A DNA stretch of 64,000 bases. Source: Tubulanus polymorphus (Eukaryota; Animalia; Nemertea). The notes beneath the pieces were generated by a model that ran no database searches, was not told where the DNA came from, and was given only the letters and a program-made list of their open reading frames with translations. Shown here one piece after another: positions 27,090 to 44,960 of the stretch. The stretch's first letter is position 1. Every line of letters begins with the position of its first letter. The stretch lies in assembly GCF_964204645.1 (NCBI RefSeq), contig NC_134030.1:2894778-2958777 (forward strand), in the 5' to 3' direction. Position numbers and translations under genes: made by a program.

Positions 27090-27235
27090 GAAAAATTCTA
27101 TATCAGAATGATTGTATTTGAGGAGCGACGTTTCGGCTAATAACTGCCATCATCAGGCGTACTGCCCGATGATGGCTAACAGTTGTTAGCCGAAGCGTCG
27201 CTCCTCAAATACAATCATTCTGATATAGAATTTTT
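27090..27235. mobile_element. Inverted pair of hammerhead-motif (Penelope-like) repeats
   Basis: The - strand reads CTGATGA-T-GGC-agttatta-GCC-GAAAC-GTC followed by AATAAA. The + strand arm reads CCGATGA-T-GGCTAAC-agtt-GTTAGCC-GAAGC-GTC. The arms are inverted copies of about 60 bp. Confidence 0.7.
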
Positions 27236-28092
27236 TTTTTTGGCTTTGTGATTGTGGGATTTCTCTCGTCATCTTCATACGCGGATATTGTGTATCTTCT
27301 CGTCTAATATGTGGCTGGCTATATTGAACGATTTTCAAAACTGTCTGGTGCAAATATCTGCATTTATTTGCAGAACGAAGCAGTGAATGTTGTCGGCTCA
27401 TCGGAGTTCAATGTTTTAATCATATTTCACTTAAACTCTACTGAATGATTTAGCAAATAAACGCAATAATCAATTAATAATCTACACAGTGAAGGGGTAG
27501 AAACGTCTCGCAGTACCTCTTTATCCTGTAGTCGGACAGTAATTCTTCAACGATGCAGTCTAGCTTTAAACGATATATCTCGTTGTTTTTAAAGTCGCTG
27601 TTATTTGGCGGTAAGTACTTAAATATTCCGCGAATTGATAATACATTAATTGTTAAAAAAAATATTTTCAAGGGAGGAAAGGAATGAATTTGAATTTTCT
27701 AACTTATTCAAAAATTTCCATCGGCGGATCTTTTGGAAATATCTGCTAAATCCAATGAAATTCACTGAAAAATCCTTCTATTTTCCTGATTCACAAATCG
27801 ATAGATGCGACAGCCTGGTCAGACTGGTTATACTGGTTAGACTGGCCGACGATCAATCTAATTCAATAAAGAGGTTCCCAGTTTCTAGGCGCCATTTTGT
27901 GGCGGTCCCTCGAGGTCCCTATTGTTGCGATAATTTGCGCTCATTTTTGAATCATAAGTTTTGATTGAATATCATATAGCTCTGCAGTCCCTTGCTTGAT
28001 CAACTTAATTTATAGACCGTTTTAAAGGAAATGAAATGCAGATATTTGCCGGTGATGCTTGGATTTTTTGAACGCAACAATTAAGAGCAGTG

Positions 28093-29094
28093 ATGTCAAT
28101 GATTACGTTATCCAGAATAAATTTATTGATCCTGATCTTGGTATCATATTATCTTATTATGTTATTAAGTTTCGATAATATTAGGCGATATAGAAGTTTA
28201 CTTTTCATCGAGGCATCAAAAAACTTTCAAGCTAAAGTTATTCTTGTTTAGGGATTCTCGGTAGAAACGCTGTTTGTCCGTCGAATATAAACACGAGTGG
28301 TTCCGACAACACCGCAGCAATTCACGATACGAGACCTTACAAATGTCGGCGTTTGATTTTCCCGAATAACCAGTTCGCTTGCGACGGTGAAATCACTATG
28401 TGGCAATATGCGATCTATGAAGCAAATAATCCGGTGAATCTGTACGGGAGCGTGTGGAGAAAATTAACAGATAATTTATACAAACACATAGGAAGCAATC
28501 ATTTACCGGGTAGAACAGTAACGGGTCAGGTGAACTTTACTGTGCCTAAAACTGATCGTATTCAATTTCTGACCGGAGATGTTTTAGGATTTCATTGCGA
28601 ATCACATCCCGTTAATTCATTCTTGAGGTTAACATCACGTTCCTCGCCATTACCCGGTGATCGCGATGCACTGGGCTATTCGCTGATATTCCATAGATCA
28701 TACGTATTCAACGGTGATGAAAATCGTTTCAGCATCACCGTCACTGAACCTGCCCCGAGCAGACGATATCGATATTTCAATATACGAGCATATGTCAAAG
28801 GTAAGTAGATTCAGGCTCGGGTACCCGAAGGTGGTTAAACACGTAACCGTTTGGTAAATCAATAACCAACGGTTAACCACTTAAAGAAATAATCCTATCA
28901 AGCAGGACCCAGTCCCACAGTTCTGAGCTAGATTTCATTTTACTACGTTAAAAATGAGCTGATTTTAACTCAATCTAATTGTGGAACTGGATATAAAACT
29001 CCCGAATTAAGTTAAAGAAATAGAAATTGCAGAATAGTTTGTTTTCTTTGAAGAGTATTAACATTTTGCAGATTCGGTTATAGAGCGCTGCTGA
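28093..29094 (+). CDS. Uncharacterised secreted protein family, paralog A
   Basis: Domain exon 28252-28800 (phase 1-1): VCPSN...YKCRRLIFPNNQFACDGEITMWQY...VWRK...IGSNHLP...GDVLGFHC...RYRYFNIRAYV. Probable last exon 29072-29094 (DSVIERC*). The first, hydrophobic exon near 28093 is uncertain. Confidence 0.75.
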
Positions 29095-30371
29095 AATCAA
29101 TCATTATAGAAAAGTTTCATATCAAAATTTGCCGGAAACATTTACATTTCAGCTAAAAATGAAGCATTTTTGTAGTATTTAGTTGTTGTTGCTGTTGCTT
29201 TGTAACGTAATAATCAGTAAGAATCCGTAATTGCTATCGATTATAAAAATGGTAAGTATTAACTTTTCAATTTCAATTAGATATTTAAAAGCAGTGATTG
29301 GTCAGACTTCGCACTACAACTATAAACAGTGACTTCTAGATGAAGATTGATACCTGTAGGTAGTCATCCCTCGGTTCAGAGGCGATGGTGCTGTACGTTC
29401 AATTTTATATCTTAAGATTCGTGCGTTTACATAGCGAAAAAAGATGTGAGAACTGGTGGTACATTGAACGTTAACTTTATTTCAATTATACTAGCTTTAT
29501 CTGGTGAATTCGCATCGGTTGAAGCCAATATATGCGCACTCGGCCGCCGATCGGATAACTACATCTGTACTTTCGATTTCCGGTTTCAAAATCAAACCAA
29601 CTGTTTCGCTCCCAACAGGGTCAATCCCTACTTAAGATCAATTGCGAAAGCTAGTATTTCGGATAGAAATAAAGTTGATGTTCAAAGTATTATCTTTCAT
29701 CGCGTTTAAAAAAAACTTAAGGTGTAGCCCCGCAACAAACTGTTGCATTCACTTTTCGTCCATTGGCTGTCCTTAACATCCAGTTATTTTTGGAAGTTTT
29801 GAAGACGCTTTAATAGAGCGTGGCATAGTGTCCCTGGACCACTAGTTGTTCTAATAGTTACTAAACATGTTTATCATTGGGATTATTTGATGATTAATGA
29901 TTTAATTAACCACCGGAAACTACAGTTGAGAATTAGAGTTAACTTCGAGTTAAATCATAACTTGCAGAGCAGTGTGGAACTGATTAACGACTCCTTCCTC
30001 TCATACAGCTAAAACAACGAGTGAAACGAGCTGAAACTTATACATTGCTAAACTTGTCTGTCAAGCGACGAATGTATCAATTTATATTTATCCTTATTGA
30101 AAATGATGATTATCTAATTTGCGCCTGGTTTGAATTGGAATCCATTGCCGCAAATCGCTACTAAATGATTCAACAGATGAAAATACACCACGAACAATTC
30201 ATTCGTTCGAAATCAATCGTTTCAAATGAGTTGAATGACGACGATAAGGATGTAATACCTTTGCCGCTATCGAAATATCAAAAACCTGCTGAACGAATTA
30301 ATGAGATAAAACAGAATAGTCACAGAAGTTTGAACCACTCGTCCTGAGATCGGGCTATCATTTCGTCAACG

Positions 30372-31414
30372 ATGCGTCTTGGTTTTATACGAAATATCCC
30401 GTGGCTGTTTTTTGTGTCTCTGGTGATATTCGAAGGTACGTGAAATAAATCAAAACTAGTCAATGCGGTTACTTTGAAATGATTGGAAATTTTCCCCCTT
30501 CCCGCCATTTGTAATTTTGTAAATTTGAATGTGTGAATGTGTGCATGCTCGATGAGTATACGTGTTGTGACCGCGTGTGAGGGATGGATGTCTCATACCC
30601 GACAAGCAACCTTGCTTTAAATGAGCACCTACCACTGATATTGGAACATCCTTTATAAATATAAAATTTGTTACAATTACTTGTGGAAATAAAATATTAT
30701 TATTATATAAGTTATGTATTACTTTCATATACGAATTTCAAATGAGATACAACGTTATATGACCGATATCTTCATTTCTCAGAGGTTTTTGGCAGTGGAA
30801 ATGATGTTTGTCCCTTGAATATTGACCTGAGTGGTACCGACAACATCGGACTAGAGCAGAGATACTACTCGTGCCGTATTCTGATTTTTCCGAATAACCA
30901 GTTCACTTGCGACGGTGAAATAACTATGTGGCAATATGCGATCTATGAAGCAGAGAATCCGGTGAATCTGTACGGGAGCGTGTGGAGAAAATTAACAGAT
31001 AATTCATTCAAACACATCGGAAGCAATCATTTACCGGGTAGAAATGTAACGGCGGGTCAGGTGAACTTTACTGTGCCTAAAACTGATCGTATTCAATTTC
31101 TGACCGGAGATGTTTTAGGATTTCATTGTGATTCTTATGACGGAAAATCATTCATTAAATTCAAACGTTCTTCAACACCACTACCCGATGATGGGGCTAT
31201 GGGTTACACGTTGTACTTCAAGGACTCATACCAATTTAGCGTTGATAGCGGAACATTCAAGAGTGGAACTTTATACAACTTTTCTGTATCGTCTTCAAAA
31301 GGCCGGTACCGATATTTCGACTTTCGGGCATCTATAGTAGGTAAGTCGATATTCTGATAATAGTTTTTCAAGATAACTTATAATCTACAAGCGACAGGAT
31401 TCCATGCACGGTAA
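30372..31414 (+). CDS. Uncharacterised secreted protein family, paralog B
   Basis: Signal exon 30372-30435 (MRLGFIRNIPWLFFVSLVIFE), domain exon 30783-31340, probable terminal exon 31392-31414 (ATGFHAR*). Confidence 0.8.
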
Positions 31415-31499
31415 GAACATCATTACTTTTCTATCGTTATTCCTAAATATACAAATCAAAACCAAGGCTAAAAATGATAAAATGATACCTTGATCTTAA

Positions 31500-31725
31500 A
31501 GTTTTTTGATTTGATTTGAACACTTTATTTTTCAAATATAATTTACAGCATAGTGTACAAAGCATAATACAAAATACAGTAAATTAGACGTGGAGGGGCC
31601 TGTAGAAACTAAGGAATAGTTTGTATAAAACAGGTCCCTCAAAAGAGAAAAGCAAAAAGAAGAAAAAAAAAAAAAAAAAAGAAAAAAGAAAAAAAAAAAG
31701 AAAAAAGAAAAAAAAAGAAAAAAAA
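31500..31725 (-). mobile_element. LINE (CR1-like) 3' end plus adjacent A-rich tract
   Basis: Minus strand has a gagggacctg...caggcccctc stem-loop, AATAAA and a (TCAAA)n tail. The A/G-rich run spans 31641-31725. Confidence 0.5.
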
Positions 31726-32560
31726 GTTGACCCGGCCGGCCGCATATCTACCGTCTACATTACTTTTCTAAAAAAGTCACGATCAAGCTAACAATAACAG
31801 ATCCGGCAGCTATAGAAATAAACTGATTACATATTCCATCAGAGTTTACAGAAATGGCCCAGCCGATTAGGAGAAACAAGGTATCATTTTATTTTAGCCC
31901 AAACTGCAGAAAAATTTGAGATTAAAAGATGGAAATCTCGCGTGAGGATATTCGTTCAAGACGAAAGATGCAGCAGGATCGGATTTGCAGGTATGGAAAG
32001 ATGATAATGTAATATCGATGGTGGGATGAGATACATTTCACAGCTGTAACACGGGGACAACCAAAACCTTAATCCAGTTCCGCAAGTGTCTGGTTCACGG
32101 AACCCCGCACTGTGCGCACTGCGCGATACCGGTACCGTTGATGCCCAGGGGCCAGGTTTATAGACTGGTATCAACTTTAACCTGGGGGTTAATTCAATTC
32201 ATTTTTAATTGAGTTAACCCCTGGCTCAAAGTTACCTCGCGTTCGGGTGAAAATCGTGGTGGAATTCGAGATGTTTATATACAAATTGAAATTGAAATTC
32301 AATAAAGTGCGGTCTGATAGCGAACGCAATTTGCTATGAATGATTCAACGAATAAATACAAGGAAGATCAATTTGTTCAATATCTATCGTTTCAAATAAA
32401 TACGAAATGATACATAAACGGACGGGAAGAATGTTACGCTTGCGCTTAGCTGCAGTCGGTCATCTTCGGAAATCTGAAATATTCATATCTCGTCGAACAT
32501 AGCGGAATAGTCACAGAAGTCTGAACCAGTCGTCTTGGTCGGACAGCTATTTCAGCAACG

Positions 32561-33425
32561 ATGCGTCGTGGTTTTATTGGAAATATCTCGTGGCCGTTTT
32601 TTGTGTTGCTGATGATATTCAAAGGTACGAAATGCGTTAATATGAAGTAGTTGAAAAATATGTATTCGTTTGATATGAATCTGATTTATATCTACCATAT
32701 GGAAGTTGATGAAATGAATGATGATGAATGATATTCATATTTCGCAGGGGTTTTTAGCAGTGGAGATGATGATTGCCCGTTGAATATGGACCTGAGTGGT
32801 ACCAAAAACACCACCGGACTAGATGAGAAATCGTATGGATGTCAACTATCGATTTTCCCGAATAACCAGTTCACTTGCGACGGTGAAATCACTATGTGGC
32901 AATATACGATCTATGAAGCAGAGAATCCGGTGAAACTGTACGGGAGCGTGTGGAGAAAATTAACAGATAATTCATACAAACACATCGGAAGCAATCATTT
33001 ACCGGGTAGAAATGTAACGGCGGGTCAGGTGAACTTTACTGTGCCTAAAACTGATCGTATTCAATTTCTGACCGGAGACGTTTTAGGAATTCATTGTGAG
33101 GCTCATGGTGGAAGTACATTCATGAAGTATAAATGTTCTTCAACACCCGATGATGGGGCTATGGGTTTTACGTTACTCTTCAAGGACTCATACCAATTTA
33201 ACGGCAGCAGCTTCGACCGAAATTCATACGTGTTTAAGACACCGGCCTTAGTAAGCCGATACAGATATCACAAAATACAGGCATCTTTCATAGGTAAGTC
33301 GAAATTCTGAAATATTATCAATTAATATGAATGAATGAATTCATTTTGCATTTCAACATAAATAGTTTTCAAGATGATATATGATATATCTAAAAGCGAC
33401 TGGATTCGATGAACGGGATGAATAA
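32561..33425 (+). CDS. Uncharacterised secreted protein family, paralog C
   Basis: Signal exon 32561-32624 (MRRGFIGNISWPFFVLLMIFK), domain exon 32748-33293, probable terminal exon 33397-33425 (ATGFDERDE*). Confidence 0.8.
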
Positions 33426-33901
33426 GTAAGTAGGCAGAAAATGTTTCTATCGTAACTCGTAAACATGAAAAGCGTAATTAAACTCCACGGAATGTAAGTT
33501 ATAAGGTTCACAGGTTGCGCGCGAGTTTTTGGAAATCTCACTCGCGTCAGGAATCCGTTGAAGACGGACGATGCAGTAAACAAATCACGTTTTGCAGGTA
33601 AGAGACATAATACATAGAATAGCCAATTTTGAAATAAAATAACTAGTGCAGTTTCACTGACATTTTGAATTATTTCCTTCAATCTTATAATCTTCATATA
33701 GTATCCCTTTTATACATATTTCAGACTGTTGTTGCTCTCCATCGATTTTGAAGAAATATTATCATGAAATGTCTCGATGAGATGCCATATGCGTTTAGCC
33801 GTGACACGAGGAAAACTAAAACCTGTTTGGTTGGGTAAAAATCTTGGTGAAATTCGAGGCGTGTCGGTCTACCTCACTCGGTATCGCTCGGACTGTAAAA
33901 A

Positions 33902-34075
33902 CAGCGAAACCTCGTTACAATGAACTCGGACACAACGATTCATCGGATATAACAAATATGGAATTTCGAAAATGAGAAAATTAATTGATTGATTTCACAC
34001 TGGATATAACGAACTATCGGTAATAACGAACAGATTTTCTGGTCCCATGAAGTTCGTTGTAACGAGGTCCCACTG
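33902..34075. mobile_element. Tc1/mariner (pogo/Tigger-like) MITE
   Basis: Imperfect TIRs cagcgaaacctcgttacaatgaact / agttcgttgtaacgaggtcccactg, followed by TA. Confidence 0.7.
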
Positions 34076-35029
34076 TATTTCACATGTTTTTTCCCAAATG
34101 TGATCCATCTCGTTTTTGAAACGACTAATGGATATTTCCCAAGGGACGCATTCGTTACAGGTCGATTAATATTTTGACGCCTATCGACACGATTTCCATG
34201 ATGAATATCATATTACGTTACAGTCTAAATCATTTTCATTGCGCAACTATATGAATGATTGATATCAGTAATTGCTTCATGACAGAGCTTAATTGTTTTA
34301 ACAATAAATTCGCTATTTTAATCATGGAAATATTTTTTGTCGATTTTTCGCGTATCGGATTAGAATGGGGTACGCGCAGTGCTACTGTGGCAATCGAGGA
34401 TTCCACTCACGGCAGGCGAGGATCCGCCAGGTTCGCTAGTAGATAGTTGGTCGTCCGCATTCGATTTCCTTTTACGTTTCAGTTGAATCTGAATGAACTT
34501 TTCTCTTAAATGAATCAATTATTTATGAAAACTAAACCGATATCTGAGTAGGAGGATGAAAGTATTGTATATCTAGTGAGTCCTGTGATAATATATGGAT
34601 TCAGGAGTCTAAAAATCAAGTTCAAAGTTCATTGAAAATGAACTTATTTTGACAACGAGCAACCTACTGCTTGTCGCGCCATCTAACGGGGTAGCTTGTT
34701 TAGCGGGTACCCCATTGTTACTTATTTTGATAACATCTGCAACAATCAACTTTGTAACGATGCAGGTTTTCCACGGACGGGCCAACATTTCATCATACTG
34801 AATACGGTTTTGATGGAAATGTATTTTGCTGGGTAGAAAGATTTGAGTGTTGAGATATGTATACCTACCAGACGTGTCACATAAGACAAAACTAAAGGAA
34901 ATTGGAGCAAGCATTAAACTGAAACAATCTTTTTGAATCTACCCTAGTAATGATAATACCCTACCTTTAACCTCATCTTACCTTCATTTTCGTGGTACAC
35001 ATGCACATCAGGTATAAGGTTTCTTTTTG

Positions 35030-35896
35030 TTCTAAATACTCACTAACCGTAATATACGATTACTCACGACTTGTAACATCAATAAATGTGAATTGGACAT
35101 ATTTTAAGATAGAATATTGAATCGATAAAAATTGAACTTTGAGATTTATTTGTCCTCGGATGATGAGTTGGGCAATTAAAGATGTCACCAACCTACCTTT
35201 TAAACTAATTGTCCGCAATCGAAAATATCGATACCGGTTTATTGAATTAGATTCTTTAAAAATGTATGATTTTCGGTCGAATGCGCTGTCGAATTGGTAC
35301 AGTTCCTTGAATCTCTCCGTGTAGCCCGATTCTTTGCGATCACCGGATAATGGCGAGGAACCAGATGTAAACTTCATGAATGTATTGCCACCATGAGCCT
35401 CACAATGAATTCCTAAAACATCTCCACTCAAATACCGAATACGATCAGTTTTAGGCACAGTAAAGTTCACCTGACCCGTTACATTTCTACCCGGTAAATG
35501 ATTGCTTCCGATGTGTTTGTATAAATTATCTGTTAATTTTCTCCACACGCTCCCGTACAGTTTCACCGGATTCTCTGCTTCATAGATCGTATATTGCCAC
35601 ATAGTTATTTCACCGTCGCAAGTGAAATGGTTATTCGGAAATATCAGTATATGACATCCGTAATATTTCTTCTCTTGTGCCGCGGAGTAGCCACCAAGGT
35701 CAACATTCGACGGGCAAACATCATCTCCAGCGACAACTCCTGAAAACATCAATATTTCCTCAAAATCATTAGATCCCAACATAATTGAAAATCGAAGTTC
35801 ATATCATACTTATTTCCCAATCACTGTTTGTAACTATTTTTACATACCTTCAAATATCAGAAATGCGAGAAGCCACGATATTAAAACAAGACGCAT
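35030..35896 (-). CDS. Uncharacterised secreted protein family, paralog D (inverted)
   Basis: Signal exon 35896-35848 (MRLVLISWLLAFLIFE), domain exon 35739-35197. The terminal exon is uncertain (about 35069-35030). Confidence 0.8.
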
Positions 35897-36061
35897 CTTT
35901 GATGTTAACTGCAGTCCTCTCTGAACAAATGAAGTGACTTCATTTTGACCGTTCTCTAATATCACTGAGCTTTTATATTTGCGAATAAATTGACAGTGTG
36001 TTGAATCTGCTGAATCATTTAGTAGCGAAGTTCAGTCAATAAAACCTTTTACCTAATTCTA

Positions 36062-36282
36062 CGGAAGCAATAAAGGGCCTTATTTATGTCGATATATCGC
36101 GATATATCGATATATCGACTTTTCGCGAGAAAAATGGTCGAGAAAACGAAATATGTCGTCAAAACGTCACGATATATCGACATATTCATGTCGACTTAAC
36201 GCGATATATCGCGGTATGTCGACATAAATATGGCGACTTGTCGAGTTGGAACGCGACAACTCGAGGCCCTTTATCGCTTCCG
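36062..36282. mobile_element. TA-flanked MITE with internal GTCGAC/ATATCG palindromic sub-repeats
   Basis: TIRs cggaagcaataaagggcct / aggccctttatcgcttccg, flanked by TA on both sides. Confidence 0.8.
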
Positions 36283-36385
36283 TATAATTCAGATATTACA
36301 TCATATTTTTTGTTTTGATAAACCTGAATCTTTTGAAGGCAGACGATTTGAGAATAGATTAAGCTTTTCCCAAACTAGATATTAA

Positions 36386-36672
36386 CCCTTTCAGTGCGGA
36401 CTAATTACTACCCTATAGTGCTGGAGATAATTTGAACATTTTGAAAAATTCCACCCTAGTGTGTTGAATAACGGGAATACCACTATAGTGCGTCTACACT
36501 GTGGTGCGATGTATCGTTAGTTACTAATATCTCACTATGTTTGACAGGTGCTGCCATTTTTCAAGAGGGATAATTACTAATTACTAATGACATCAATACA
36601 CCATAGTGCGGTGTACAAGCAAATCTATCACTGATTTATACACTGCACTGCAGTGTAGACGCACTGAAAGGG
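36386..36672. mobile_element. piggyBac-like MITE
   Basis: TTAA-CCCTTTCAGTGCG...CGCACTGAAAGGG-TTAA: TTAA target duplication and CCC/GGG termini. Confidence 0.9.
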
Positions 36673-36987
36673 TTAAGCAAACAGTGTTGGCGCAACCATA
36701 GGTAAATCTAAACAAATATCTTCACTACTAAATGTAAAGAGCCCTATGTCCTTTGTGGATGAGACAATGCAGTTTCATCTAATCAGTTTAGACACCACTG
36801 CAGATATATCGACGAGCTGTAAATCACAGCCATGGTTAAAATTGAGTAGTTACATTTACGATAAAACGATATTGAAGTCTAAACTTTTGAAATAAAAACA
36901 TTCGAGTAAAAATCAATAAAGTACGGACAGGTGAGAATCATACAATGTGCTTATGATTGAGATAGGAAATTTGCCTGTGGCATCAAC

Positions 36988-37106
36988 GCTCTCTCCCCCA
37001 ACCCCCCTCTCTCTCTCCCCCTCTCTCTCTCTCTCTCCCTTTCTCTCTCTCTCCCCCTTCCCTCCCCCCTCTCTCTCTCTCTCTATCCCCCCAACCCCCC
37101 CTCTCT
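36988..37106. repeat. CT-rich low-complexity tract upstream of GPCR
   Basis: Mixed (CT)n and poly-C runs. Confidence 0.9.
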
Positions 37107-37469
37107 ACAAGTCCGATCGAAAAGCGATTAGGATTCTTTCATTCTTCGTCCTATGATTGGGGACAGGTTTTCACATAATGATACCATAATAATGATGATA
37201 ATACAGTGCAGTCAATATTCTAATGGTATTATCAATTTACAAAATCAATTATTTACAATAGTCGCATTTTCAGAGAAGTTCCATTTAGTGAACTCGGGCG
37301 TGAATCACCGAGTTTAGTCCCCGAGGAAATCATTCACAAACGAATAAACGTCGGGTGTGTGTTCTTGGTATCAAAGGTAAGACCACCGAGCATTTAAAAT
37401 CGGTGGAATATTTCGAGTTTCAAAACTGTAGGAGCGTCGATAGGTTTCATCAGAGATAGAGAAAACAAA

Positions 37470-38546
37470 ATGATGAACGCTTCTTCAAATATCGCCCGAT
37501 ACGTGAATAACTCGTACGTAAAGACTACTACTACGACAGGAGGTGCTGCTGGATTTAGACCGCATCCTCGGTGTAAATACATTCACTATTCCGATTATAA
37601 ACCGTTTCACGTGAATCTCTTTCTGCAAATCACGAATTTCGTCATTTTTAGTATTGCCGTATTCGGCGTTTGCGATAATTTGATATCGTTTGTCATACTC
37701 AGCAAGGAACGCTCAAGGAACACGAGTATACTATATTTGAGATGTTTGGCCGTTGCTGACATGTTTCAGTGTTTATCATATGTTGTTTTTAATTTTCACT
37801 ACGAGCTCTACAGCCATACTCTGTTACTGGACATGACCGCTGAAATAAACCACGTTATGAAGCGCATGTATTCCTACACTCAAGTAATCAGACCCGTATT
37901 TTCAATGATCGGTGATCTGATAACTTTAGTAATCTGCGTAGACAGATACATAGTTGTTTGTTGGCCCTTTAAAGCTGCTAGAATAATCAGCCTGAAGAAA
38001 GGTTACATCTACATGTTTTCTATCATATTAATTTCTGTCGCTGATCAGAGCAAAAACTTCTTTAAATATACTACAAGGCGTTCACGCAATCCGTGCACTG
38101 GATACGAACGGTGGTCTCAAAGACGAACTCCATTTTCTAGAGATACTCATTTGCGATACTACGACGCTTTCGTTCGAGCTCCAATAATCAACTTCATCCC
38201 GACAGTGATAGTGATTATTATAACTATTCGATTAGTTCTCGTTCTGACATCAGCAGAAGCGGCGAGAAAATCAATTTCCACGAATCAAACTCGTAACGAT
38301 CGTAGTTTAACTCTGACTTTAGTTGTAATTTCCTGTTTCTTTTTAGTTCGAAAATGTTTTTTTCTATCCGCGGCCGTCAGGAACTTAATTCTAAACTTAA
38401 GTGGTAAATTCGGTAATGACTCGGCCGCGCTCTATTTAAATCCGACTCAACGTATTCTCAATATGGTTATAGCGTCCGCTAATTTTTTCATATACTGCGC
38501 TTCGAGGCGTCAATTTCGTAAACAGTTCAAGACAATTTTCTGCTAA
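37470..38546 (+). CDS. Intronless rhodopsin-class (class A) GPCR, peptide-receptor/FMRFamide-receptor-like, 358 aa
   Basis: Seven hydrophobic segments. Motifs: TM1 G-x-x-D-N, TM2 LAVAD, TM3 VDRY..VCWP, TM5 P, TM7 NFFIY, helix 8 FR..F...FC. N-terminal N-glycosylation sequons are present. Confidence 0.92.
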   Translation: MMNASSNIARYVNNSYVKTTTTTGGAAGFRPHPRCKYIHYSDYKPFHVNLFLQITNFVIFSIAVFGVCDNLISFVILSKERSRNTSILYLRCLAVADMFQCLSYVVFNFHYELYSHTLLLDMTAEINHVMKRMYSYTQVIRPVFSMIGDLITLVICVDRYIVVCWPFKAARIISLKKGYIYMFSIILISVADQSKNFFKYTTRRSRNPCTGYERWSQRRTPFSRDTHLRYYDAFVRAPIINFIPTVIVIIITIRLVLVLTSAEAARKSISTNQTRNDRSLTLTLVVISCFFLVRKCFFLSAAVRNLILNLSGKFGNDSAALYLNPTQRILNMVIASANFFIYCASRRQFRKQFKTIFC

Positions 38547-39612
38547 CGACATATCGATTCCAACACGAAATTATGTACATAACATATGAAATAAGCCTTG
38601 AATCGAAGATAAACCGCACAACGAAAGCGTCACATAATATATCATTTGTAGTTCACACCATGCAGGTGAAATTTCTACGGTGACTAAGTACGTTTCATCT
38701 TTGAAATCAACATGTTACCGCTTTTTTATTCATCTTAACCTGTATTATCACAGTCTAGGGAAGAAAAATGAGTATTGACGTAATTACAAAACAGAAAATA
38801 AAAGCATCTGGAAACATTTCAAACTTTATTTACCCATTCTAATTGCATTGGAGCGATCTATTGATAAATTAAGCTATTTCTCAAGTTGGATTTTTTAATA
38901 CATAAAAGTTCCTATGAGGTATTTGTTTTCCCTTTGATCGTTATTGTTAGATATATTTATGAATGAATGAATCTTTTTTCTTTTTCTAATGTAACACTTT
39001 TTTGGGGGTGGTATATCCTACAAGCTATGCTTTTTTATATCTTTCCCTCTGATAAATTATGTCAATTTATACTGAATTTGTGCAAAAACATGATAATTTA
39101 TAAATTGTATATTATTTGTTATAAATTGCTATAATTTTCAGAAAATAAATAAATAATAATAATAATAATAATAATATTTGATCCGAAAAATGTCACGCTT
39201 TATTTTTTCTGCTTCTAGTGTTTGCTCTTGAAACGTTTTTCAATAATTATCTTCACCCGGTAACTTACTACTGATATTTTAAGCCGAGTGTAGGTCGTAG
39301 CATAGTGAATACTTCCTGCATTTTCGATCAAATAATATTTTCATATAGATTGGTGCAATGATTGTTCTACTAAAGTAACCGTCAAACCAAAATTGGAAAC
39401 CTATTGCTTGGGTTTTTGTTTCGTTGGTTTTGCAATTGGATTTCGATAGCTCATTTGCTATGTCTCATTTTGTTGCTACTAAATCATTCACTAGCTTCTC
39501 CTCTCTGCGAACGCTTTCACCAATTTTTTTCACGCATTTGAAATAATAACATATAGCATACAACACAGTCACGTAAACCTCTCGAATTGTATAGAAAGTT
39601 ATTTCCTCAACG

Positions 39613-41677
39613 ATGCATCTTGGTTTTCGACGAAGAATTAGTTGGTGGCTTCTTGTGTCGCATATATATGAAGGTATGTAGTACAAATTACGTATTAAAT
39701 CTTAAAAGTGCCACCTGTATAATGATGTATACGTAATAGTGCCAGAAATCTCCGGTGCAGAAGGATCAATTTTAATCTTTATTCATTTCATTGAGATGCA
39801 AATGGTCCAATACATTAATATGTAGTGTAAGACCGGTGACATAAAGCCGTTTCACCAGTTCAGGCAGATAAGAGTGCAAAACCTCAGGAAGATACAGGCA
39901 CACATTAACAACTAAGTGAATTAAATCGTCCCCGTTAACGCTTATGATGTATCATTATGATTAGAAATCATCTTCCAAACCAAACGACTCAATTGTCGGG
40001 TGTTGCTAGTTGAAATTATATCCAAAAAGCTGATCCGAAAAACTTTTGACTAGGTTGTTTCTGAGGGGTTTATACCGACAGGAACTCGACCCGACCTGAC
40101 GATTTTTAATGATTTCATTGGTCAGAAATGTAAAAATAATGCCAGAGTTTTGCAAGGTCCCTGACAAAACCTTGAATTCTAGGTCCGGCCTTAAGTGTAT
40201 AGTAAACAAAGGGGAACCTCATAATATGTGTAACCGGCTGGTTGTTGTATCGGCAGGTTGGCTGGGGAACTAGCATTTACACCAAAGGTACAGGATTCCA
40301 GCCATCAGGAACAACAAGGCAGTTAGCACGGGACAAAATCGCGTTTGAATCGGAACTGGTTCCGGAAATGACTCACTGCGCTTTGTTTAAACATTGTTTT
40401 GTATCGATTGAGAGGTTTACGTGTGAGCGCACTTTCTAATCCGGCACTGGCCAAATTCAGCTCGGGCCTGATCCGTGCAAATTTGACCCGGGTCGTTTTC
40501 AGTTCGGTCGTTTCTTCATCGACACTATTTTTGCTGGAACATGAAATAACATATACGTAACTAGGGATCTGTAACAAGCATTGACATCATTATTGGACTG
40601 TTGCATGAGTACTTTTTTAGTTTTGAATTCATCAACATCAGCACAAAAAATATGGGGTTTAATATCCTTTAGAACAAATGTTCTCAATTTGTATAGATAG
40701 CATACGATTTAAGGTCAGGGAAACTCCTCATTCTGTCGTTGTTACGACTGCTAAACTATAATAACTTGCAGTGAAGATTTTAATACTTATTATTATAGCC
40801 TTTCTATATATATGTTAAATATTTTCTCGTGGAAAATTCTATGAAGTTATTAGATTTTGATCATGACAAATAGACTGGTAAATGAGTTGAAAATCTGAAT
40901 ATTCTTTTCAGGGAATTTCTCTAGAAATGACGTTTGTCCGTCGAATATAAACCTGGGCTGCACCAACAACTCCGCGGCGCTAGAGGAGAGAATTTACTAC
41001 TGTTATCCATTTATTCTGCCGAATAACCAGTTCACTTGCGACGGTGAAATCACTATGTGGCAATATACGATCTATGAAGCAGAGAATCCGGTGAAACTGT
41101 ACGGGAGCGTTTGGAGAAAATTAACAGATAATTCATTCAAACACATCGGAAGCAATCATTTACCGGGTAGAAATGTAACGGGTCAGGTGAACTTAACTGT
41201 GCCTAAAACTGATCGTATTCAATTTCTGACCGGAGACGTTTTAGGGATTCATTGTGAATTTCAATCTTCAAAATCATTCATGAAATTTAGATTTGATGAT
41301 CACGCTGCATTAGGCTATCTGTTAGAGCATAAGGAACCTTTATACCAATTTAACGGTATGCGAAAAAGTTTCAGCCAGAATCCCCGCAACTTTACGCCAA
41401 CTCAAGGGAAATTCAGATATCGTTCATTTCAAATAAAGGCATTTTTTAAAGGTAGGTTTGTGAATGAAATTATCAACAAAATGAATTTCAGTATTTTCAA
41501 AACATAGAATAAATGAATGAAGAAATATTTGTGACACACATCACGTCTGCTAATGCATTATAGATTTTTGTATTGTTTCTTCCTGTTTTCTGGTTATTCT
41601 GCTTAATGTTCAATGCTGGACTAATTGTCTTTTAAAATCAATTTTCATTGTCATTTACGTAAGGTTTCCACGAATGA
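39613..41677 (+). CDS. Uncharacterised secreted protein family, paralog E
   Basis: First exon 39613-39673 (MHLGFRRRISWWLLVSHIYE; weaker signal peptide), a 1.2-kb intron, domain exon 40912-41451, probable terminal exon 41664-41677 (GFHE*). Confidence 0.75.
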
Positions 41678-42240: not shown

Positions 42241-44960
42241 TTAAGAAACGGCTTGTATGAATTTATCCATTAAATCTGCTCCGCTATCCGGATCACCTTT
42301 CAGATATTTATCCAATTCTTTACTAAATTCCCCGTTTAACAGATTATCCAACTGTTCGGGATTGATTCCTGCGGCGCTCTGAGCTCCGGCGCCGTCCAGA
42401 ACATTTTTCAACTGTTCGTCGATCGCTTTTTCGAGATTATCCAGTTTCTCTTTAACGAGTTCGTGTTTTTCTCGAGGTGTTCTCGGCGTAGTTGCAGCTG
42501 CAGTTTTATTACTCGCAGTAGGTGGTTTACTATCGGTCGAAACTGAAGGAGTAGATTCCTCCACGACCGGTGCAACGATTTTAGGCGATGATTTATGATC
42601 AGGTTCCTTTACCTCGTTTTTCTTCACTTCCTCCTCACTCGGTTGCGGTGAACTGTCTTTCTGTTGTTGTTCATCTTCTATCCTAATGACAGGTACAGCA
42701 GCCGGTTTGATTTCCTCAGTTTTCTCTTCGGTCGTTTCTTTGTGTTTATTATCCGCATCGTCTGCTATAACAGCCGTCGTTATTTTCTGTTCGTCTGTTT
42801 TGATAACCGTTTCTTCGCGAACTAAATCTTCCATTTTTACGCTTTCGTCCGTTTCCTTGATCACGTCGTCATTATTCGAGTTTTTCTCCGATTGTTCAGA
42901 CGCCTCTTCAGCAGTTTTAATCACTGATATTGTCTCTGTTGTGGTTGTAATATTTTCGGACGTTGTTACAGTATCTGAACTTCTGTTCTCGTTATTTTCA
43001 CCAGTTTCGCCGTTTTCTACATTATTATCACTTTGTTCTAGTTCAGCCTGTTCACTGTCTTCTATTTCAGCAGTTTTAGTCACCTCATCAGCAGTTTGTT
43101 CAGTTGTATCTTTCACCTCAACTCGTTCGCTTTCTTTATCATCACTAACCTCCTCGGCTACAATTTTCTGATTTTCTTCGTTGTTCTTTGTTTCAACTGT
43201 TGTTTCATGTTCTGTAGTTTCGACGGTTGTTGTCGTTATTATGACGTTTTCTTGCTTTTCACTATCAACAGACACCGTATTTTGATCTACTGCAGCAGTT
43301 CCGTCACTTTTCTCTTCGTCAACTACAACGGATTTACTTTCTGTATTTGTGTCGTCTTGCTTTTCCTCCGTTGCGGTACTCGTCGTTGCTGCACTTTCTT
43401 CGTTACTTTCCGCCATTTTCCGATGTTCTACGACGACATTTTTATTCCGTTGCTGTTGCGCAAGCACGTCCTGTACTGTCTGGTGTACACTAAGTTTCGT
43501 AGAAGGACTGTTATCTGTTTTTGAGGCCGGATCGTCCGCCGAGTTATGATCGATGATCTCTAAACGATTTGAAACTACGCGTTTCGTTGAGCCGTCAGCG
43601 GCGGTAGTTTTTCGTTCCTGATAAGTCTCAACGGCCGTATCGTCCCGGTTTATCACAATAGTTCGATTTGGAGTAGCCGCATGGGGCGTCTCGGGTCCGT
43701 GGTTGACTATCACAGCTGTGCCGTTTTGATTATATTTCTTATTCTGAAAATGAAAACCAAATCAGTGAATTATCGGGTTGTATTTAAAGATGAATATCTG
43801 TAACTGATAATTCATAAAAAAACGTGGCCGGTTCTACAGTTGTGAGTTAGAGTTATCTCCGAGGTAAGATTAGGTTATTTAAAATTTTCCTACATTCAAA
43901 TCTTAACTCTAAACCGTGGAACTGGGGACCAGGAATACAAAAACTCTTTAGCATACGATTTTTCGACGAAGCGCGTATAATGTCAAAGAACAGAAAAAAC
44001 CATCGTAGAATAATGAAATTATTTCTAATGTGAAATAACACGATACAAAAACTTCCTTAGATTTGGAGCAACTAACAATATTTGTTATACATGATATAAT
44101 TAAAGAAAGACAGTCGTATAATACTTCACCACGCTAACCGACGTTAGGTTTAAATCCTAAAATGTTTGTCCACACAAAACGTAAAGACATAGCGTTATAA
44201 GTGAATCAAAAGCAGAATGATTTAATGTATATTATACACGTAGAAATATCTTAAGTTCGTGGGAAAAATTTCCCGCATGAATCTGAACGCTTTTGTGCAC
44301 GTTTCCAATATTAATTCACGGAGATTTTTTGCCGATATGAATAACACACAGATTTTATAGCCTACGATTAGAAAAAATAGCGTCGTTCTAATAATTGAGC
44401 ACATAAGGAGACATATATTACGCCTACCTGCTGGTAAGATATATACGCGCACTCTATCAGACCTGCTACTGAATGCGAGCATACGGTACACGACCGGATA
44501 ATTTGTGCGCAATAAAATTCAGAAAGCACATATCGACTCTCTCCGCGAACATGTTTTACGTTTTAAAATCTATTTTCGCACGAAAACATGCTTATTATTT
44601 CCGATTACGTGAAGAGAATAGCCGATTGTTTTCACGGGGGATGTGTCATCGGGGAAAGTGTTCCGCTATAGAACACAGTTATACGGTGTTGATCGATACG
44701 GCTCCGTCGTCACCGTGTCGTTCATTCAATTGCTAATTATCAATTCATAACCGTAATTTTTTTTACAGCCGTCTTTAGAAATAGAAATAATGATATTTTA
44801 TACGGGAGGTGGTGGGGAGTATCTGTAAAACCAGAGGTGAATTTTGGGATGAAGCGATGAATTATTTATAAGTAATCAAAATAGCTAAATCTTTATATGT
44901 TGGTCTCGAGCATTTTTCTTTTAATGCGATTGTAATAATCCCTGGTTTATATATTATATA

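Follow-up and report, generated by a model that had tools for sequence, protein, structure and literature searches.

The 64,000-nt stretch of the genome of the ribbon worm Tubulanus polymorphus analyzed here (contig NC_134030.1, positions 2,894,778 to 2,958,777 of the forward strand; henceforth the window) carries a cluster of five paralogous genes, designated A to E, of which only D is inverted, the other four (A, B, C, and E) being on the forward strand. Each gene has a single domain-encoding exon in which a core of 237–240 bp is nearly identical among the five copies, whereas the flanking parts of the same exon differ extensively. We consider it probable that the cluster consists of old tandem duplicates in which gene conversion keeps the core uniform, and that the gene products belong to an unnamed extracellular family with a predicted fold resembling those of lectins and carbohydrate-binding modules (CBMs). 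Read in this way, the mechanism is ordinary concerted evolution, a process that is already known, and no new system need be invoked.

Divergence of the core and its flanks

Any two copies of the core differ at only 4–18 bases. Six of these positions separate genes B and C, the number estimated in an initial annotation made from the letters of the window, which had also placed the core boundaries within 1–2 bases of ours. The edges of the core are abrupt, as had been noted. In 30-nt windows, the mean pairwise identity rises from 0.58–0.69 to 0.92–0.99 within ~15 nt at the 5′ edge, and returns to 0.64–0.70 over ~45 nt at the 3′ edge. Private substitutions are nevertheless present in the cores of A (~7), D (~7), and E (~3), with D carrying a private patch of six changes within 11 nt (~35426–35436), and genes B and C have a 3-nt indel. 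These private changes and the indel count against the view that the core identity is an artefact of assembly or polishing, in which reads of one copy corrected another. Such a process, moreover, could not convert 40%-diverged sequence to 95–99% identity with an exact reading frame, and the assembly, with 268 Mb in 77 contigs, shows good contiguity, making this view extremely improbable.

The contrast between core and flanks extends to synonymous sites. By the Nei-Gojobori method, the synonymous divergence (dS) is 0.04–0.16 in the core vs. 0.5–2.0 in the flanks, and the nonsynonymous divergence (dN) is 0.01–0.06 vs. 0.24–0.66, with 0–2 differences at 25–30 fourfold-degenerate sites in the core and 3–8 at 8–21 such sites in the flanks. 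Tree lengths under a maximum likelihood codon model are 0.36 substitutions per codon in the core, 3.5 in the N-terminal flank, and 5.0 in the C-terminal flank. The initial annotation had named beforehand a uniform dS with only dN lowered in the core, i.e., ordinary purifying selection, as the pattern that would speak against its description; given that the core dS lies far below that of the flanks, this pattern is absent, and both the near-identity of the core at synonymous sites and the much faster divergence of the N- and C-terminal parts are borne out. The dN/dS ratio (omega) is 0.38 in the core, 0.69 in the N-terminal flank, and 0.62 in the C-terminal flank, i.e., below one in every partition. 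A core omega of 0.38 indicates that the few changes in the core are mostly amino-acid changes, which fits recent homogenization and not protein-level constraint alone.

The age of the duplicates is indicated by the DNA around the domain exons. In a self-comparison of the 26–43 kb region of the window, introns and intergenic DNA were unalignable, and outside the domain exons only the first exon of genes B and C was shared; the duplicated units are therefore old. The flanks are indel-rich and keep the anchor residues that had been noted in the divergent segments. They can still be aligned, i.e., they are better conserved than the introns, and the anomaly in these exons is therefore the uniform core rather than hypervariable flanks. 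The initial annotation had called the flanks hypervariable, a description that does not hold, as their divergence does not exceed what the age of the duplicates would produce. They evolve under weak constraint, with no sign of diversifying selection above neutrality (omega ~0.6–0.7).

Focal hypermutation and strong diversifying selection have been proposed for some toxin and immune families, and the five genes could, by analogy, be young duplicates in which the core gives the true age and the flanks were split by such a process. The sharp contrast between the core and its indel-rich flanks would suit this history, as would the fairly high omega of the flanks and the ratios of ~0.7–1.0 seen in the C-terminal part of a second, younger cluster in the same genome (described below). 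However, the unalignable introns and intergenic DNA mark the whole units as old, the synonymous sites of the flanks are saturated like neutral DNA and yet the flanks are more alike than the introns, omega stays below one throughout, and the tree of the core conflicts with that of the flanks. We regard a young origin as very unlikely, and since the introns are saturated, nothing calls for hypermutation in the cluster of genes A to E.

Evidence for exchange between the copies

The pattern of differences within the core is mosaic. Its eight parsimony-informative characters give six different splits of the five sequences, 18 of the 28 site pairs are incompatible by the four-gamete test, and the Hudson-Kaplan minimum number of recombination events (Rm) is 4. 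The tree of the core, ((C,E),D),A,B, in which B falls close to A, differs from that of the flanks, ((B,C),D),A,E, and each data set rejects the tree of the other in the approximately unbiased (AU) test (p 0.014 and 0.022). Pair-specific shared tracts reach past the core for B–C and C–D, and a B–C fragment in the C-terminal flank is significant in a Sawyer-type permutation (global p 0.004). Within the 268-Mb genome, the five copies in this cluster are the only occurrences of the core DNA, and there is therefore no outside donor, cassette, or mobile element.

Several points weigh against gene conversion in an unnamed family as the explanation. For the core, the Sawyer-type permutation on polymorphic sites gives no significant result; the test is without power there because all five copies were homogenized together and few polymorphic sites are left. 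Nor is the GC content at third codon positions (GC3) elevated in the core, as GC-biased conversion would lead one to expect. Identical tract edges in five copies demand an added assumption, either a homology threshold or selection, and part of the mosaic pattern could also result from homoplasy at a few permissive sites. No close ortholog with which the paralogs could be compared was found in the collections searched, in which the best outside relatives are ~33% identical. No protein of genes A to E was present in the protein collections, though another protein of the same genome was, and the five genes seem to be unannotated. Finally, regarding the predicted fold discussed below, structural Z-scores do not exceed 8.5, a range common for models that have no true relatives.

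Some of these points would be accommodated if the core were held by selection at the nucleotide level, for instance on RNA structure, on a target of small or antisense RNA, or on splicing signals, with no exchange required. Near-invariant synonymous and fourfold sites, tract edges that coincide in all five copies, the ordinary GC3, and the non-significant permutation test are all in keeping with such constraint. However, shuffled sequences fold as well as the core does, whichever strand is considered (z 0.0 and +1.3), and an Rfam scan of the core gave no match. Differences that are mostly amino-acid changes would be odd if every base were constrained, mosaic sites and incongruent trees point to exchange, and the core matches the conserved block of the protein family (see below) and no other detectable feature. 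Constraint on the nucleotide sequence is, in our judgment, unlikely.

Under gene conversion, the cluster may have arisen as follows. Old tandem duplications would have yielded the five genes of T. polymorphus, and repeated short-tract conversion among them, the inverted copy D included, would keep the ~240-bp core near-identical. We infer that conversion would halt at the core edges where the flanks are too diverged for heteroduplex formation, and/or that tracts overwriting the flanks would be selected against, and that the tract boundaries would be set in one or both of these ways. The flanks would retain the true age of the duplicates, drifting under weak constraint.

There is, in addition, a very slim chance that the core acts as a homology platform, at which germ-line or somatic recombination re-pairs the divergent N- and C-terminal modules of the copies. 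The mosaic core, the one inverted copy, and the slightly differing distance patterns of the N- and C-terminal flanks for gene A are compatible with such a role. If true, it would provide combinatorial variety in a lectin-like recognition family, and would concern a phylum in which next to nothing is known about immune recognition.

A large and widespread domain family

All sequence searches were run with single exons. The five proteins gave no Pfam match at E ≤ 1, a word-based search of 5.8 billion proteins gave no match, and a sequence search of the PDB with two profiles returned chance matches only; the initial annotation, which could assign no named family, was correct in this respect. A family profile built from the five copies and ten distant paralogs of the same genome, on the other hand, matched 1176 representative clusters at E ≤ 0.001 among 1.8 billion proteins (177 at E ≤ 1e-10), and a language-model search (Atlas) yielded further sponge and annelid clusters. 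In a Pfam scan of 93 family members, no recurrent family was found, and the domain itself was recognized in none. DUF7323, a weak lead, matched only 4 of the 93 (E ≥ 0.002, below the cut-off), had no match in this genome, and found no backing in the literature.

Many members of the family are short single-domain proteins, and others are large mosaics with 2–12 copies of the domain alongside Sushi, HRM, PAN, EB, or Kringle modules, often Sushi. The named members come from nemerteans (Lineus and Tubulanus), mollusks (Haliotis and Babylonia), an annelid (Owenia), an echinoderm (Patiria), and hemichordates (Ptychodera and Glandiceps), and all are labeled either "uncharacterized" or "polycystin-1-like". 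In the T. polymorphus genome, for which the initial annotation had proposed a count of paralogs, the family profile has at least 63 exon matches, many in small tandem clusters. The closest relatives of genes A to E outside their own cluster are only ~33–39% identical. The cluster had been put forward as a candidate for an undescribed system; judged by these profile matches, it is instead a local subfamily of a very large, widespread, and unnamed extracellular domain family.

The family-wide conserved block is the same stretch as the homogenized core, and makes up the N-terminal half of the domain, with the C-terminal half being variable across the family. In gene C the block corresponds to residues 37–116, with near-invariant C43, G45, W50, R69, G80, I104, G109-D110, and G113. 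Four cysteines are conserved, and each copy has 4–5. This gives a picture in which the conserved half-domain stays similar enough to exchange, and the fast half-domain and the N-terminal segment do not.

A second tandem cluster, on contig C9 at C9:11680000-11742600 (11.68–11.74 Mb; L017, L019-L025), contains seven paralogs in which the domain is split by an intron. It includes an annotated member, XP_074657933.1 (Tubulanus polymorphus), which maps to the genome at 96–99% identity. This cluster is younger than that of genes A to E and shows the same tendency in weaker form, with a dS of 0.11–0.15 in the core vs. 0.21 in the C-terminal part, where dN/dS is ~0.7 and reaches ~1 in some pairs. Elsewhere in the genome, two distant paralogs located 4 kb apart (L012 and L013, at C3:7377794-7378150 and C3:7381986-7382342) have identical matched protein segments, and therefore stem from a very recent duplication or form a further converted pair.

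Predicted fold and candidate relatives

Using an alignment of 93 sequences, AlphaFold2 produced an all-beta model with a mean predicted local distance difference test (pLDDT) score of 78.5 and a predicted template modeling (pTM) score of 0.78, in which confidence is good in the core and weak in the loops around residues 137–143. A Foldseek search of the PDB gave no match at E ≤ 0.001. Structural comparison with VIA-align returned jelly-roll neighbors with Z-scores of 5–8.5 over 100–158 residues, including a mycobacteriophage tail-tip protein (Z 8.5), a cyanophage capsid protein (Z 8.2), the Cwp84 lectin-like domain (Z 7.6), PHR domains (Z 5.1–5.5), CBM6/32/35/36 (~5), and F-type lectins (Z 4.7–5.2). 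Independently of the structure search, the nearest named clusters in the language-model search were Lectin_like (PF18560), DUF4082, and PHR.

The predicted fold is thus a lectin/CBM-like jelly-roll beta-sandwich, for which no homology is claimed. The predicted all-beta sandwich was compared with the Cwp84 lectin-like domain (PF18560), DUF4082, PHR, CBM6/32/35/36, and F-type lectins, the first three of which are also the families named by the language-model search; there is, however, no detectable sequence similarity to any of these, and the Z-scores lie in a range common for unrelated models. F-type lectins are characterized by the sequence motif H-x(24)-R-x-D-x(4)-R/K, which a regular-expression search found in none of the five copies.

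Given a similar distribution and its partnership with Sushi repeats, we also considered the ApeC domain. Like ApeC (PMC9585378), the domain described here appears to be an extracellular domain of aquatic invertebrates, present alone in short, probably secreted proteins or together with other extracellular modules, and expanded in some lineages. ApeC, at ~200 a.a., is defined by eight conserved cysteines and by three DXED motifs (PMC9585378). It is excluded, as our domain has four conserved cysteines, not eight, and DXED/DEXD is absent in all five copies.

A role in recognition appears plausible, and we infer that the proteins may bind an extracellular ligand, perhaps a glycan. The initial annotation had proposed a family with a constant scaffold and a variable surface, as expected of recognition, mucus, or venom effectors. 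The secreted appearance of the products (see below) and the lectin/CBM-like prediction are in line with this proposal; the hypervariable flanks it relied on are not upheld.

Gene models and organization of the locus

Domain exons were delimited by reading open frames outward from the shared motif (Table 1). They are 540–558 bp in length, against the ~540–560 bp given previously, and all are multiples of three in phase 1 at both ends, bounded in every copy by a polypyrimidine-AG acceptor and a conserved G|GTARGT donor. Upstream of each domain exon lies a homologous first exon with an ATG start, a basic N-terminus followed by a hydrophobic stretch, and a phase-1 donor. Judged by eye, these signal-like features are weak in gene A, the copy that the initial annotation had marked as uncertain, although DNA at 27524-27616 shows similarity to the first exons of genes B and C, which are themselves 82.7% identical. 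N-glycosylation sequons are kept within the core. Based on these features, the five gene products look secreted, and each gene would encode a small, probably secreted single-domain protein of ~200 a.a.

Table 1. Exons and homogenized cores of genes A to E, in window coordinates.
Gene	Feature	Position	Strand	Remarks
A	Candidate first exon, weak signal peptide	27553-27610	+	Open reading frame and donor scan, ATG to phase-1 GT
A	Domain exon	28252-28800	+	549 bp, phase 1-1
A	Homogenized core	28362-28598	+	
B	Putative signal-peptide exon	30372-30435	+	Open reading frame and donor scan
B	Domain exon	30783-31340	+	558 bp, phase 1-1
B	Homogenized core	30890-31129	+	
C	Putative signal-peptide exon	32561-32624	+	Open reading frame and donor scan
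C	Domain exon	32748-33293	+	546 bp, phase 1-1
C	Homogenized core	32858-33097	+	
D	Domain exon	35197-35739	-	543 bp, phase 1-1; inverted copy
D	Homogenized core	35402-35638	-	
D	Putative signal-peptide exon	35848-35896	-	Open reading frame and donor scan
E	Putative signal-peptide exon	39613-39673	+	DNA similarity
E	Domain exon	40912-41451	+	540 bp, phase 1-1
E	Homogenized core	41019-41255	+	

No consistent candidate for the tiny terminal exon of the initial annotation emerged from conserved downstream segments or from acceptor and open-frame scans, and only the G|GTARGT donor favors a further exon. In an annotated distant RefSeq paralog, the frame ends with a stop codon at the homologous position, and in genes A, B, and C the frame closes 2–5 codons beyond the donor of the domain exon. 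A two-exon structure with a short read-through is therefore possible for these three genes.

The forward-strand domain exons might instead be parts of one multi-domain gene, given that exons of phase 1-1 could in principle be spliced serially and that many relatives hold 2–12 copies of the domain. However, each domain exon has its own homologous ATG-bearing hydrophobic exon, which at 49–64 nt would break the frame and is thus unusable as an in-frame internal exon. The inverted orientation of gene D and the presence of a separate receptor gene between it and gene E speak against this as well. We give almost no credence to a single gene, and these same observations lead us to describe the copies as five separate genes. 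The intervening receptor gene (37470-38546, forward strand) is a single-exon gene encoding a 358-a.a. member of the rhodopsin family (Pfam Srw, 7tm_1, and Srx).

Other features were noted in and around the cluster. A 150-bp near-perfect palindrome (27091-27235; 89% self-complementary) is located ~320 bp upstream of the candidate first exon of gene A; its Rfam matches are all sub-threshold, belong to plant miRNA families, and are probably due to chance. Between genes B and C, a long low-complexity tract rich in A and T (31584-31791) contains spurious poly-Lys and poly-Phe open frames, and short inverted repeats (30–60 bp, 87–93%) occur upstream of the first exon of gene D (36077-36236). Directly downstream of gene E, on the reverse strand, is a 490-a.a. 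open frame (42241-43713) that has a high content of Glu, Thr, Asp, and Lys and contains acidic repeats of low complexity.

Comparison with known systems and significance

Partial gene conversion is known from tandem families such as the human fetal gamma-globin pair and the genes of the major histocompatibility complex (MHC). The cluster of genes A to E resembles these families in having a sharply bounded block of low dS inside old, diverged paralogs, with mosaic shared polymorphisms and a block tree that conflicts with the rest. Unlike the gamma-globin and MHC examples, it comprises five copies, one of which is inverted and one of which lies beyond an unrelated gene, and its block, contained in one exon, corresponds to the conserved half of a protein domain. 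At the core tract, we saw no boundary element (e.g., a simple repeat).

Constant and highly variable parts are also combined in several secreted invertebrate families, including conotoxin precursors, the sea urchin Sp185/333 proteins, and the fibrinogen-related proteins (FREPs) of snails. The five genes share with these families a tandem, lineage-expanded arrangement, secreted-looking products, and a conserved part set against fast-evolving ones. Unlike in these families, the omega of the flanks is 0.6–0.7, and not above one.

As far as the data show, no new kind of mechanism is revealed by this cluster. It does offer a clean case, open to quantification, in which gene conversion is restricted to the conserved half-domain within a single exon, across five copies of which one is inverted, and its sharp intra-exon boundaries may be useful for studying what sets the edges of conversion tracts. 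The cluster further draws attention to a large family of extracellular domains in marine invertebrates for which neither a Pfam model nor a characterized member exists, with more than 1000 sequence clusters and, in this genome, dozens of loci, its domain often standing beside Sushi repeats. The remaining interest lies in the sharp tract boundaries and in a large domain family without a name or function. Should these proteins prove to bind glycans or microbes, the family would also enlarge the little that is known about the recognition molecules of ribbon worms.

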